Source: Podarcis pityusensis
Lineage: Eukaryota
Direction: 5' to 3' (one strand)
Assembly: GCA_964106645.2 (NCBI GenBank)
Contig: OZ067038.1
Length of the DNA stretch: 64,000 bases
The translations under genes were made by a program, and so were the position numbers. Each line of letters begins with the position of its first letter. Position 1 is the first letter of the stretch. Below, piece by piece: positions 16,567-56,370 of this stretch. A model generated the notes under the pieces. It saw only the letters and a program-made list of their open reading frames with translations. It had not been told where the DNA came from and made no database searches.

Positions 16567-16931
16567 GATACCCTTCTTTGGTAAAGGTTTAGGATTTGAT
16601 GGTAGAAAGAGAATGAAGAAAGTGTTTGTGAGTAAAGATTGATGCATCTGTCCATTTCAGTTTCCTCTCAGATTCTCATTGTTCCAGTCTTAGGTTCAAG
16701 TTTGCCACATTTCCATATTAGTTTGTGATTTTAAATAATAATAATATTAATACGCACAGAAATTCACCATTTTATTAAGCATTATCCTAACACTCACATG
16801 TTATGCAGTCTTGCCCAATATATGCATTCCCCAATATAATGCATTTTTATATGTTATTTTCACTAATAAAAGTGTTTCTAAGCACACTTTCTCCTAATAT
16901 ACACATTATTTTTGGTTAGATAGCTGCATCT

Positions 16932-31286: not shown

Positions 31287-32965
31287 GGACAGCAGCAGGA
31301 GAGCTCAGGTGATGCATCACTTTAACTTAGGGGAGGGTAACTTTTCCAGTCCTTTGTGGGAAACCCTCCAGGGGCTGCATGTTAAGGTAGCAGTAGATAA
31401 GGGAGTTGAGACCGGAGGCAAAGTTGGGCAGTGCAAAGGATTGCAGCTTCTATTTTTGTACAGTAGACTACAATCCAACCAGGCAAAAGTCTGGTTTCTA
31501 CACATACAAACAGACCTTTCCATCCACCATTCTTGGGAGTTGGAAGCTGGGCTGGCAATTGCTGCCATATTTCTCTACCTATCTGCCAAGATGAACCCTT
31601 TTCTCAGCTTGTGTATTGAAGGGAAGGCATGCTTAACAAGATGGATGACCACAGTGATTTGCTGATCTTAAAGTGACAGGCTAGAGTAGATCGGACGTGT
31701 GCCACACCCTCCAGATATTGATGGACTATAACTCCCGTTATCCAAGACTCATGGAGGCAGAGGCTGATGGAAGCTGGAGTTCAAGAAGGTCTGGAGGCCA
31801 CCATTTGCGTATTGCAACTATCTACATTTACCTGGGAGTAAATTGGACACAATGTGACTTACTCCGGAATAAATTGCACTGTGAGTATAGTTATGAAGGT
31901 GACAGTTCATGCCAACAATTACCCATCCTATAACCTGAGGCTTGGTGCTTAATGAAAGACTAAAGGGTGGAAGGGGCTCAAGCGTAGCTGTATATACTAT
32001 TTGAGGTTCATCCTCCACCTAGTAGGCACAGGAGGTATCGGAAATTTGAGCACCAGATACTGTAAGTGAACTTCCTCATTTACCTTAAAGGAATGTTAAT
32101 TTCAGAGCTCTCCTGGGGCCATTAAAATGCTGGTATTGTTGAAGTGTTGAGCCAAAAAGGGGGGGAGGGGAAAAACCTAATGTGTGTCATTGAAAACACA
32201 ATTATAAAGGACAGCTGTGTGCACCTGGGTTTTTGACCCTGAAGAGCTTTGCAAAATGAAATGCCACAAAACCAGAAGCATCCCATGACAGCTTAATGGA
32301 ATGGAGGCAAACAAAGCCCACATATGATGGATTTTGAATTGCTGCTACAAATGGAGCATTACGGGACATCGCTCCAATTAATGAGCAGTTTGGTTCATTG
32401 GCACCAACTAAAACGACTTTCAAGAGGATATTTACTTAGGGTCAAAACTCATCCCGCTAACATGCTGCTTGAGTAAATGGTCTGTGTGATAGGAAGGATG
32501 AGCGATGGGAAGGAAATGCTGTCATTTTGGCCACTCCGTGCAAGCTCCTGTGGAAATAGGGCAGCTGTGGACCATCCCAAAAAAAGGGCCTGATGACTCC
32601 TCAGTGGGTTCTGTAGGACAACTGAATAATGGCTGAAAATAGAACTCATTCGGGCATCATCTAATAATGCAGCACTTGCTCTGAGCTGTGACATGCTAAC
32701 CAAACGTTAGAAGGTGGCTTACAGTCCATCCAAAAGGCATCTGTAGGACAAAACAGAACTTCTGCTCTCCTCTTTAAGCCACTGTTGAATAAGCAGCATG
32801 CATCAGGCCTGGTGTGCCATTTTAATATCTGAAATACACTGTATATTTTGTTTGATATTCTGAGTTGGTAGTCTGGTTTTATTGTTATCCTGCCCACACA
32901 CCCACACACACCCTTTTTATTTCCCTGAGCCATTGTATAGAGGCAGGACAGAAAATGCACTAACT

Positions 32966-33733
32966 ATGGAGCCAGATATATGGAGAAACGTGACTCAAAG
33001 AAGTAGGAGGCCCAGGGTTCGCTCTGATTGTTTAGAAATACAAAATCGCTTTGAGGTCTTCTCCCCTAGCATGGAAGACGAAGAGCAGACTCCATTTGAG
33101 GATCTCTCCCTCATTACAGTCGATCAGGTATATGAAGACCAGCAGCAAAGTCAGTCCTCAGGGAATGTGCAGGCGACCTTGGAACGGACAGCTCACGGAA
33201 GAACCCCGACCAAACCTAAGAGGAGGCGTGTAGTGGTGATAGGGGATTCCCTACTGAGGGGAACAGAAGCAGTGATCTGTGGGCCTGACAAGATGTCTCG
33301 GGAAGTGTGCTGTCTCCCCGGGGCTAAGATCCAAGATGTAACTGAACGACTGCAAGGAATCATAAAACCCACTGACAAATACCCCTTCCTCTTGGTTTAT
33401 GTGGGAACCAATGACAGTGCAAGCAATAGCCTCCAGAAGATCAAAAGAGACTACGAGGCTCTGGGCAGGAAATTGAAGCAATTAAATGCACAAATTGTCA
33501 TCTCATCTGTCCTCCCAGTTGAACGACGTGGCCCAGGGAGAGAGGGGAAAATAGTGGAAGTGAACAGCTGGCTTCGCAAATGGTGTAAACAGGAACGGTT
33601 TGGATTCTTAGATCACGGACTGCAGTTTCTTGAAGATGGACTTCTGGCAAGCGATGGGCTGCACCTCACAACGGTTGGGAGAAATGTTTTTGCCAAAAAT
33701 CTCAGAAACCTCATCAGGAGGGCTTTAAACTGA
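32966..33733 (+). CDS. CR1 ORF1p, C-terminal part with SGNH/GDSL esterase domain (5'-truncated)
   Basis: Motifs [16 protein letters not shown] and DGLHL, ending in the CR1-type RALN*. The start of the tracked ORF (32882) lies in flanking DNA. Confidence 0.92.
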
Positions 33734-33738
33734 CTAAT

Positions 33739-36651
33739 GTGGGGGAGGGAGACAGTGCTCCTGAAGGTAGGAGTCTATCAATTGATGAAGATGATCATCC
33801 AAATGTCATAGACCAAATGGAGCAAACAGCACGCAGACCTAGTGGTGGGAGGAAAAAATCCTTAAATAAGAGACACGGGGGAATGATTAATGGACTTCAA
33901 TGTCTGTACACTAATGCGCAAAGCATGGGAAATAAACAAGATGAGCTTGAGCTCTTGGTACAACAAACAAAATATGACATAATAGGCATCACTGAAACCT
34001 GGTGGGATAAGTCCCACGATTGGAATGTAATAATGGAGGGATACACTCTATTTCAGAGAAACAGACCAGACAAGAAAGGAGGAGGTGTGGCATTATATGT
34101 CAGGGATGTGTATACCTGTGAAGAGATCCAAGATTTAGAACCTCAAAGCCAAAGTGAGAGCATTTGGGTCAAAATTAAGGGAGAGAAGAATAACAGTGAC
34201 CTCATTGTGGGAGTTTACTATAGATCCCCAAGCCAAACGGAGGACATAGATGATGCCTTCCTGGAACAGATGGCCAAGCATGCAAAAGGAAGGGAGATAG
34301 TAGTAATGGGGGACTTCAATTACCCGGATATTTGTTGGATGTCAAACTCAGCCAAGAGCATAAGGTCAAACAGATTCCTCACTGGCCTTGCAGACAACTT
34401 CATTGTCCAGAAAGTGGGAGAAGCAACAAGAGGAACAGCCATTTTAGATCTGGTCCTAACCAATGTTGATGACCTGGTTAGTGGGGTAGAAGTGGGAGGA
34501 TCATTAGGCGCGAGTGATCATGCTCTTCTGAAGTTTACTATACAGCGGAAAGGAGCAGCCAAGCATACTAGGACTCAATTTCTTGACTTTAAGAAAGCCG
34601 ACTTCATAAAACTTAGGGAAGTGCTGGGTGAGATCCCATGGACAGTAATACTAAAAGGAAAGGGAGTTCATGATGGCTGGGAGTTTGTCAAGAGGGAGAT
34701 AGTAAAAGCACAATGTCAGGCAATACCAATGAGACGGAAACATGGAAGGTGCCTAAAGAAGCCAGGGTGGCTATCTAAAGAACTTTTAACTGAGTTAAGA
34801 TTAAAAAAGGATGTGTACAAAAAATGGAAAAGGGGGGAAACCACCAAAGAGGATTTCAAACAAATAGCCAGCACGTGTAGACACAAAGTCAGAAAAGCTA
34901 AAGCACAGAATGAACTCAGGCTTGCTAGAGAGGTTAAAAGCAACAAAAAAGGCTTTTATGGGTATGTTCGTAGCAAAAGGAAGAACAAAGAAACAGTGGG
35001 GTCACTCAGAGGAGAAATGCAAACAGGGGACACAGAAAGGGCTGAACTCCTCAATGCCTTCTTTGCCTCAGTCTTCTCCGATAAAGAAAACAATGCCCGA
35101 CCTGAAGAATTTGGAGCAAATGATTCAGCAGAGGAAACACAGCCCAGAATAACTAAGGAGATAGTACAAGAATACTTGGCTAGTTTAGATGTATTCAAGT
35201 CTCCACGGCCAGATGAACTGCATCCAAGAGTATTAAAAGAACTGGCAGATGTGATCTCAGAACCACTGGCAGTCATCTTTGAGAATTCCTGGAGAACAGG
35301 CGAAGTCCTGGCAGACTGGAGGAGGGCAAATGTTGTCCCTATTTTCAAAAAGGGGAAAAGAGAGGACCCAAATAATTACCGCCCAGTCAGTCTGACATCA
35401 ATACCAGGGAAGATTCTGGAGCAGATCATTAAGCAAACAGTCTGTGAGCACCTAGAAAGGAATGCTGTGATCACCAATAGTCAGCATGGATTTCTGAAAA
35501 ATAAGTCATGTCAAACTAACCTGATCTTGTTTTTTGACGGAATTACAAGCCTGGTAGATGGAGGGAACGCAGTGGATGTAGCCTACCTTGATTTCAGCAA
35601 GGCATTTGACAAGGTGCCCCATGATATTCTTGTAAAGAAGCTGGTAAAATGCGGTCTTGACTATGCTACCACTCAGTGGATTTGTAACTGGCTGACTGAC
35701 CGAACCCAAAGGGTGCTCATCAATGGTTCCTCTTCATCCTGGAGAAGAGTGACTAGTGGGGTGCCACAGGGTTCTGTCTTGGGCCCGGTCTTATTCAACA
35801 TCTTTATCAACGACTTGGATGATGGACTCAAGGGCATCCTGATCAAATTTGCAGATGACACCAAACTGGGAGGGGTGGCTAACACCCCAGAGGACAGGAT
35901 CACACTTCAAAACGACCTTGACAGATTAGAGAACTGGGCAAAAACAAACAAGATGAATTTTAACAGGGAGAAATGTAAAGTATTGCACTTGGGCAAAAAA
36001 AATGAGAGGCACAAATACAAGATGGGTGAGACCTGGCTTGAGAGCAGTACATGTGAAAAGGATCTAGGAGTCTTGGTTGACCACAAACTTGACATGAGCC
36101 AACAGTGTGACGCGGCAGCTAAAAAAGCCAATGCAATTCTGGGCCTCATCAATAGGAGTATAGCATCTAGATCAAGGGAAGTAATAGTGCCACTGTATTC
36201 TGCTCTGGTCAGACCTCACCTGGAGTACTGTGTCCAGTTCTGGGCACCACAGTTCAAGAAGGACACTGACAAACTGGAACGTGTCCAGAGGAGGGCAACC
36301 AAAATGGTCAAAGGCCTGGAAACGATGCCTTATGAGGAACGGCTAAGGGAGCTGGGCATGTTTAGCCTGGAGAAGAGGAGGTTAAGGGGTGATATGATAG
36401 CCATGTTCAAATATATAAAAGGATGTCACATAGAGGAGGGAGAAAGGTTGTTTTCTGCTGCTCCAGAGAAGCGGACACGGAGCAATGGATCCAAACTACA
36501 AGAAAGAAGATTCCACCTAAACATTAGGAAGAACTTCCTGACAGTAAGAGCTGTTCGACAGTGGAATTTGCTGCCAAGGAGTGTGGTGGAGTCTCCTTCT
36601 TTGGAGGTCTTTAAGCAGAGGCTTGACAACCATATGTCAGGAGTGCTCTGA
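33739..36651 (+). CDS. CR1 ORF2p: APE endonuclease plus reverse transcriptase
   Basis: 970 codons without a stop. EN motifs: CLYTNA, GITETW, GVYYRSP, MGDFN, SDH. RT motifs: [32 protein letters not shown] (35848-35859). The frame is already open from 33634; first ATG at 33817. Confidence 0.97.
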
Positions 36652-36780
36652 TGGTGTTTCCTGCTTGGCAGGGGGTTGGACTCGATGGCCCTTGTGGTCT
36701 CTTCCAACTCTATGATTCTATGATTCTATGATTCTATGGCCCTGTTCAAGCATTCAGATGGTGTTCAGTAAACACAGATA

Positions 36781-36961
36781 GGGAAGAGCCATAGCTCAAT
36801 GGAAGAGCATCTGCAGTGCAGGCAGAAGATCCCAGGTTCAATGCCTGACCGCCCTAAAATCCTAGAAAGCTGCTGCTGCTGCTGCTGCTCAGTGCAGACA
36901 ATGCTGAGCTAGATGAACCAATGGTCTGACTCAGTATAAAGCAGCTTCCTATGTTCCTATG
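36781..36961 (+). mobile_element. tRNA-derived SINE with LINE-derived tail
   Basis: A-box-like TAGCTCAATGG, B-box-like GGTTCAATGCC, tail GGTCTGACTCAGTATAAAGCAGCTTCCTATGTTCCTATG. Confidence 0.8.
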
Positions 36962-37045: not shown

Positions 37046-37046
37046 G

Positions 37047-37090
<44 letters not shown>

Positions 37091-37103
37091 TGTTTGTGTT
37101 TGT
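37046..37103. repeat. (GT)n microsatellite with imperfect flanks
   Basis: Seen directly. Confidence 0.97.
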
Positions 37104-56174: not shown

Positions 56175-56370
56175 CAGAACCATTTAGGAAGCTGCCTTAT
56201 ACCGAGTCAGACTATTGGTTCATCATGCTCAATATTGTCCATAGTGACTGTCACCGGCTCTCCAGGATTCCAGGCAAGAGTCTCTCCCAGCCCTACCTGG
56301 AGAGGCCAGGGATTTGAACATGGGAACTTCTTCAAGCAAGGCAGATCCTCTACCACTGAGCTATAGCCCC
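56175..56370 (-). mobile_element. tRNA-derived SINE, same family as 36781
   Basis: Minus strand GGGGCTATAGCTCAGTGGTAGAG...GTTCAAATCCC and tail CTGACTCGGTATAAGGCAGCTTCCTA. Confidence 0.8.

Follow-up and report, generated by a model that had tools for sequence, protein, structure and literature searches.

Organization of the CR1 element and of its ORF1/ORF2 junction

The 64,000-nucleotide stretch of Podarcis pityusensis DNA analyzed in this study (assembly GCA_964106645.2, contig OZ067038.1; hereafter the window), a sequence without any N, carries one copy of a CR1 long interspersed nuclear element (LINE), in which the junction between the two open reading frames (ORF1 and ORF2) has the appearance of a -1 programmed ribosomal frameshift site. 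No further copies of the element were found within the 64 kb. The features that define the element and its junction are as follows:

32963 to 36738, plus strand: 5'-truncated copy of a CR1 LINE, lacking the 5' untranslated region (UTR) and the first 104 or so codons of ORF1; 36738 is the last position of the octamer tail
32963 to 33733, plus strand: ORF1 remnant with an SGNH/GDSL esterase domain (Pfam PF13472, E 1.6e-09), C-terminus ...RRALN, stop TGA
33724 to 33730, plus strand: slippery heptamer T_TTA_AAC in the X_XXY_YYZ register of ORF1
33731 to 33733, plus strand: ORF1 stop codon TGA, directly abutting the heptamer
33741 to 33752, plus strand: conserved G-tract GGGGGAGGGAGA, 10 nucleotides past the heptamer, candidate frameshift stimulator
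33724 to 36651, plus strand: ORF2 frame from the putative shift site to its stop (36649-36651), in the -1 frame and open from 33634
33817 to 33819 and 33883 to 33885, plus strand: first two ORF2-frame ATGs, both 5' of the endonuclease motif (about 33895)
about 33913 to 34521, plus strand: endonuclease domain in ORF2 (Pfam PF03372, E 1e-16)
about 35350 to 36000, plus strand: reverse transcriptase domain in ORF2 (Pfam PF00078, E 1.3e-33)
36709 to 36738, plus strand: CR1 3' tail, 3.8 copies of the 8-nucleotide unit TCTATGAT (Tandem Repeats Finder and the sequence itself)

The element is identified as a CR1 LINE with an esterase-type ORF1 by the domains of its two ORFs together with its octamer tail. 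ORF2 carries an apurinic-type endonuclease and a reverse transcriptase (PF03372 and PF00078), the 3' end consists of 8-nucleotide microsatellite units without poly(A), and ORF1 is homologous to the ZfL2-1 ORF1p esterase, the structure of which has been solved (PDB 4c1b). The nearest proteins are lacertid, namely those of Podarcis muralis (96% identity) and Zootoca vivipara (87%). The ORF1 proteins of full-length relatives are 346-360 residues long and include an N-terminal part with a zinc finger and a coiled coil; this part is missing from the window copy, as is the 5'UTR. Homology to the full-length Podarcis and Zootoca ORF1 begins at 32963, around residue 105 of 360 (tblastn), and the multi-copy depth in DNA contigs jumps at about 32974, matching the truncation point. 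Since the ATG at 32966 lies at this truncation point, it is not the start codon of the family. Being 5'-truncated, the window copy keeps the signal and probably cannot drive its own expression.

The last ORF1 codons of the window copy are GCT TTA AAC TGA, and ORF1 overlaps ORF2 by 100 nucleotides. A -1 slip at the heptamer would continue as CTG ACT AAT GTG GGG GAG GGA GAC, yielding a protein that reads ...RRALN followed by ORF2-frame residues, while the nearest ORF2-frame ATG is located 86 nucleotides 3' of the ORF1 stop. This layout bears out the original prediction, which had been made from the letters of the window alone and had placed the heptamer in the X_XXY_YYZ register right before the ORF1 stop, ORF2 in the -1 frame and open from 33634 with the same overlap and ATGs at 33817 and 33883, and a slip that reads straight into ORF2. 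The G-rich sequence, which the prediction put about 8 nucleotides downstream, has to be moved slightly, as the G-run begins 10 nucleotides after the heptamer, at 33741.

Conservation of the heptamer and of the ORF1 C-terminus

The junction was compared at the DNA level in 11 lineages, comprising the window lacertid, Chrysemys (turtle), Grus (crane), Varanus (monitor), Narcine (electric ray), Paramormyrops (mormyrid teleost) and five Logan/ENA contigs, with the junction DNA being fetched by protein id alone and its nucleotides unseen beforehand. The cross-lineage comparison was confined to the junction segments. The esterase domains of these lineages share 30-67% identity (median 41%), and the codon test considered the 41 residue columns shared by at least 10 of the 11 lineages. 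The terminal leucine is encoded by TTA and the terminal asparagine by AAC in 11/11 lineages, and these are the sole columns with one codon among the degenerate ones; the 39 other degenerate conserved columns use 2-6 codons each, including the catalytic residues of the esterase domain, which use 2-5. The codon before Leu-Asn is GCT in three lineages and GGT, TCT, TAT, ACT, CTT, GAT, TGT or GAG in the others, so the base preceding TTA is a T in 10 of the 11 lineages, across eight different amino acids, and the one exception (the GAG codon) gives G_TTA_AAC. The X_XXY_YYZ register is kept in 11/11 lineages, and a stop codon (TGA, TAG or TAA) directly follows the heptamer in all lineages sampled. 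The junction thus has the same anatomy across these lineages and is conserved at synonymous sites, as had been anticipated for TTTAAAC.

A second sample consisted of 69 unfiltered CR1 ORF1 ends from vertebrate host DNA in metagenome contigs, belonging to several subfamilies that are 40-50% identical to the window ORF1. The heptamer TTTAAAC followed by a stop was present in 51 of the 69 ends and single-base variants in six, the remainder being decayed copies with premature stops. Counting both strands, the window contains 15 occurrences of TTTAAAC where 15.3 would be expected (about 1.2e-4 per position); the heptamer taken alone within the window is weak evidence, and its significance comes from the cross-lineage comparison. 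One of the 'metagenomes' (contigs Ga0065711 and Ga0181612, loci L003-L082) has contigs as long as 84 kb with hundreds of diverged vertebrate CR1 copies in all, and is therefore largely host genome.

At the protein level, a Leu-Asn end was observed in 89 of the 120 best ORF1 homologues, which come from lizards, snakes, turtles, crocodilians, birds, frogs, sharks and rays, and the homologues without it are mostly truncated or mis-predicted models. A search with a shark-type seed also recovered xLN ends in catsharks, stingrays, a mormyrid teleost, Xenopus and a second turtle lineage, the amphibian evidence being at the protein level only. A chimaera protein ends in ...ALNY, with ALN one residue ahead of the annotated end. 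When 29 diverse proteins were aligned, the final L and N proved to vary as little as the catalytic Gly-Asp-Ser, and the residue before them is variable (A, T, G, S, D, C, Y, F, H, L, Q or E). A U-ending codon is possible for all of these residues except Glu and Gln, and Gln was seen in one case only. The third-last residue can be any of at least 12 amino acids, nearly all of which can be encoded with a final U, a finding that fits the earlier suggestion of selection on the slippery site as the cause behind the ALN* ending.

Many public gene models (P0020, P0047, P0054, P0082, P0118 and others) fuse the CR1 ORF1 esterase to host genes or misname it, with names such as 'Replicase polyprotein 1a', 'Beta-parvin' and '40S ribosomal protein S24 isoform X2'. 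Besides, a 298-residue 'SGNH/GDSL hydrolase family protein [Klebsiella pneumoniae]' (P0039), which is 57% identical to the window ORF1 and ends in ...RRALN, is probably vertebrate DNA contaminating a bacterial assembly.

Phase and start codons of ORF2

ORF2 lies in the -1 frame in 11/11 lineages, confirming the invariant phase that had been predicted, and the endonuclease domain maps to this frame in every copy that is not visibly decayed. Stops close the -1 frame of many bird-type copies up to 10-13 nucleotides before the ORF1 stop, and the overlap barely exceeds the heptamer. The first in-frame ATG of ORF2 is found from 10 nucleotides before to 248 nucleotides after the ORF1 stop, at a position that is not conserved across lineages. 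ORF2 is long and open without any ATG ahead of the endonuclease domain in locus L086, in the crane locus L002 and in many bird copies, and the first ORF2 ATG of Varanus (L087) lies three codons inside this domain; the expectation that the ORF2 ATG would not be conserved therefore holds. Even in the lineages without an ATG before the endonuclease domain the ORF2 frame is open from the heptamer onward, which is what a fusion would require and would be unexpected for an untranslated stretch.

No restart codon is located at or within a few nucleotides of the ORF1 stop in the window, and a close ATG occurs in few lineages only. In the teleost locus L090 (2424-2436) an ORF2-frame ATG directly precedes TTT AAA (A_ATG_TTT_AAA_C), and in L089 (2446-2450) the stop and an ATG overlap as TAATG. 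These two layouts could permit stop-start coupling beside frameshifting.

The G-tract downstream of the heptamer

Downstream of the heptamer there is a G-tract with the consensus GGGGG-A/U-R-GGG. In a set of 23 representative junctions, a run of at least four Gs starting 6-11 nucleotides past the heptamer was present in 19, with a mode of 10 nucleotides, compared to 5% of shuffles. The third-codon positions +10 and +13 within the tract stay G despite variation in the encoded residue, indicating that the constraint acts on the RNA. A canonical -1 signal has a stable hairpin or pseudoknot 5-9 nucleotides downstream; the secondary-structure folds showed none that is shared, and the conserved G-tract stands in its place. 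We consider the G-tract a likely stimulator of the proposed shift.

A G-quadruplex was rejected, given that the canonical three-tier motif was present in only 2 of the 23 representatives and two-tier motifs were inconsistent. A long-range partner for the G-tract inside the element, the 3'UTR hairpin included, was also rejected, as the best duplex had -22.5 kcal/mol while shuffled tracts had a mean of -20.1 and a best value of -23.4. The shark-type junction sequences are nearly unstructured upon folding, and Rfam contains no relevant family for the junction. Some lineages have hairpins of their own that are not shared, such as a G7/C6 hairpin at a 6-nucleotide spacer in Varanus, which is the only clear one at that distance, and a bird hairpin (CCAGGC...GCCTGG) about 27 nucleotides downstream.

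RNA reads across the junction

Two RNA sequencing (RNA-seq) runs with the same species label cover the family about 40x across the junction; the reads come from many copies, and this coverage describes the family and not the expression of this locus. Among the best-supported differences listed for the two runs, whose reads derive from many copies, there was no insertion, deletion or splice joint at the junction, which speaks against the two frames being joined through transcript slippage or splicing. A sequence resembling a splice donor was noted about 32 nucleotides past the ORF1 stop in the lizard (AAG|GTAGGA, 33763-33772) and in the turtle (GAG|GTAAGT, L001 about 16570-16580); birds and fishes lack it, and the listing for the RNA reads has no joint at this point. 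In addition, a 9-nucleotide in-frame insertion, GAAGATGGT, follows position 35013, between the endonuclease and reverse transcriptase domains, in one contig and in roughly half of the RNA-seq reads, which suggests that two subfamilies are expressed.

Discussion

Our comparative analysis indicates that the junction in the window is likely this copy's instance of an ancient and conserved -1 programmed frameshift cassette, which would join the esterase-type ORF1 to the endonuclease/reverse transcriptase ORF2 in the CR1 and L2 LINEs of jawed vertebrates. The elements with an esterase-type ORF1 would therefore probably make their reverse transcriptase by means of a ribosome that slips back one base. 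The cassette, consisting of the heptamer, the abutting stop and the G-tract, appears to have been inherited with the esterase-type ORF1 since before the split of cartilaginous and bony fishes. The gag-pol-like fusion of ORF1 and ORF2 that had been proposed for this locus is supported by the comparative tests; our inference from the conserved sequences extends to the shift of the ribosome, to its efficiency and to the part played by the G-tract.

According to the proposed mechanism, ribosomes translating ORF1 would arrive at U_UUA_AAC with the stop codon next, and a fraction of them would slip back by one base, with the tRNA-Leu re-pairing on UUU and the tRNA-Asn on AAA. The slipped ribosomes would read CUG in place of the stop and go on into ORF2, possibly stimulated by the G-tract that typically lies 10 nucleotides downstream. 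The predicted product is a fusion of ORF1p with ORF2p, of about 1,320-1,335 residues in full-length members of the family, and it would be synthesized at a constant low proportion relative to ORF1p, like Gag-Pol.

Several observations weigh against frameshifting at this site and need to be considered. The metagenome-derived subset of the 23 representatives had been filtered on TTAAAC, and the unbiased evidence is that of the 11-lineage set and of the 69-copy count. A spacer of 10 nucleotides is long for a classical structure-driven signal. The 85 nucleotides after the heptamer of the window copy fold at -17.5 kcal/mol, compared to a shuffle mean of -19.8 (z +0.77); the folds of the 23 representatives share no common helix and show no consistent bias (z from -2.4 to +1.9), and RNAalifold found 0 pairs in 14 diverse junctions. 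A stem-loop or pseudoknot was rejected as the stimulator on the basis of these three results, which come from predictors that do not cover pseudoknots. The stems named in the original prediction do exist, as two 5-bp helices, and the part they were given as stimulator finds no support in a region that folds no better than its shuffles. Moreover, ZfL2-1 reportedly retrotransposes with little dependence on ORF1p, so that ORF2 would be workable unfused. Finally, two in-frame ATGs (33817 and 33883) precede the endonuclease domain in the window element, and an ATG is found at the junction in few lineages, at -10 in the teleost L090, at +2 in L089 and at +5 in L060 and L021, which means that initiation or reinitiation may act as a parallel route.

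A first alternative is that ORF2 is translated, as has been suggested for human L1 and silkworm SART1, by termination-dependent reinitiation or another unconventional initiation at the ATG at 33817 or 33883 or at a non-AUG codon, and that the heptamer, stop and G-tract serve as a signal retaining the ribosome after termination. This would agree with reviews holding that the ORF2 of bicistronic LINEs needs an unconventional initiation dependent on ORF1 translation (PMC2881922; PMC3708506), as well as with the stop codon that always abuts the motif, the UAAUG-like arrangement of L089 and the absence of strong downstream structure. However, reinitiation leaves unexplained the constant -1 phase of ORF2, the X_XXY_YYZ register of the motif in ORF1, the U before UUA whatever the amino acid, and the fact that the sole variant is another known slippery heptamer. 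There is also no conserved start codon for it to use; a CUG overlaps the stop only in the elements with UGA, while those with UAG or UAA give CUA. For these reasons we regard reinitiation as an unlikely explanation of the cassette.

The frozen nucleotides could instead have some other role at the RNA or DNA level, for example as a site where proteins of the element itself, or a host G-tract-binding protein, attach while particles are assembled, with the slippery likeness being incidental. The conservation of the G-tract at synonymous positions without a conserved pairing partner is typical of a linear motif recognized by a protein. Yet the motif is tied to both the reading frame and the stop of ORF1, and ORF2 is always open in the -1 frame from exactly that point, which a pure binding site would not need, and this explanation therefore seems improbable to us. 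A chance heptamer combined with protein-level selection for the C-terminal ...ALN of the esterase, for which the ordinary count of TTTAAAC in the window and the invariance of Leu-Asn in the proteins would speak, is very improbable and already contradicted by the codon test of the 11 lineages, given that protein selection can fix neither TTA among six Leu codons and AAC among two Asn codons in 11/11 lineages nor a U at the third position of a variable preceding codon.

Frameshifting in the CR1/L2 elements would have close counterparts among viruses. The heptamer U_UUA_AAC is among the shiftiest for mammalian ribosomes, and the form with G_UU(A) is that of equine arteritis virus (PMC5009743). 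[quoted passage not shown] These viral sites have a pseudoknot about 5 nucleotides downstream, whereas CR1 shows no conserved structure, a stop abutting the heptamer and a G-tract that is typically 10 nucleotides away. The PRRSV nsp2 site is closer in this respect, since its unstructured C-rich motif, located 10 nucleotides past the slippery sequence and bound by PCBP and nsp1-beta (PMC9000960), matches the CR1 G-tract in spacing and lack of structure. It differs in being C-rich and not G-rich, in its slippery sequence G_GUU_UUU and in giving both -1 and -2 shifts, and the likeness of the CR1 tract, known from sequence, is a resemblance and not membership of the same class. Retroviral and other long terminal repeat (LTR) Gag-Pol systems and the genes derived from them, such as PEG10, also join an accessory protein to a polymerase by a -1 shift with a low polymerase ratio, while CR1 is a non-LTR element with an unrelated ORF1, the esterase. 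SART1, with its UAAUG stop-start, and human L1 resemble CR1 in having a bicistronic LINE RNA and an ORF2 expression coupled to ORF1 translation, but they need no fixed phase or slippery heptamer and make a separate ORF2p instead of a fusion.

In the literature on LINE translation, the mechanism for ORF2 is described as unclear or as reinitiation (PMC2881922; PMC3708506), and a 2016 review of recoding lists only HeT-A and TART among non-LTR elements (PMC5009743). We found no description of frameshifting in CR1 or L2 in the open literature, including these reviews and the CR1 surveys of 2014, 2024 and 2026, and an early remark may exist in older articles on elements of chicken, turtle and fugu and on CR1-like esterases, which the search did not reach.

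A further step would be that the G-tract, typically 10 nucleotides past the heptamer, is an unstructured stimulator recognized in trans, either by a host protein that binds G-tracts or by ORF1p of the element itself. Under this proposal, the esterase-type CR1/L2 elements would be the first non-viral case of protein-stimulated -1 frameshifting, with a cassette older than the split of cartilaginous and bony fishes. We put it forward tentatively and consider it rather doubtful. If ORF1p were the factor that binds the G-tract, the ORF1p:ORF2p ratio would be self-regulated.

Elements of the CR1 group are the dominant retrotransposons of birds, reptiles and many fishes, according to the CR1 survey literature. 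How the second ORF of a bicistronic LINE RNA is translated is a long-standing question, and a heptamer kept from sharks to birds would give the CR1/L2 clade a concrete and easily tested answer. If frameshifting takes place, the ORF1-ORF2 fusion would tether the esterase to the endonuclease and reverse transcriptase, changing the picture of CR1 particle assembly and cis-preference. It would also extend the cellular -1 frameshift sites by a large class in which the stimulator is, unusually, a G-tract and not a structure, and would explain the puzzling invariance of the ...LN end of the ORF1 esterase. Additionally, the order of TTTAAAC, a stop, about 7 nucleotides and a run of at least five Gs offers an annotation landmark for the ORF1/ORF2 junction, which would curb the splitting or mis-fusion of the ORFs by gene-callers.

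Sequences 3' of the element

Directly 3' of the CR1 tail, a short repeat at 36770-36961 includes a run of (GCT)7 and has two copies of TTCCTATG at its end. With its CR1-like octamer tail, this repeat looks like a short interspersed nuclear element (SINE) mobilized by CR1; ARAGORN found no intact tRNA in it. The opposite strand carries a partial match to the same repeat at 56185-56239. The SINE-like repeat is followed on its 3' side by a (GT)n microsatellite of about 58 nucleotides at 37046-37103.

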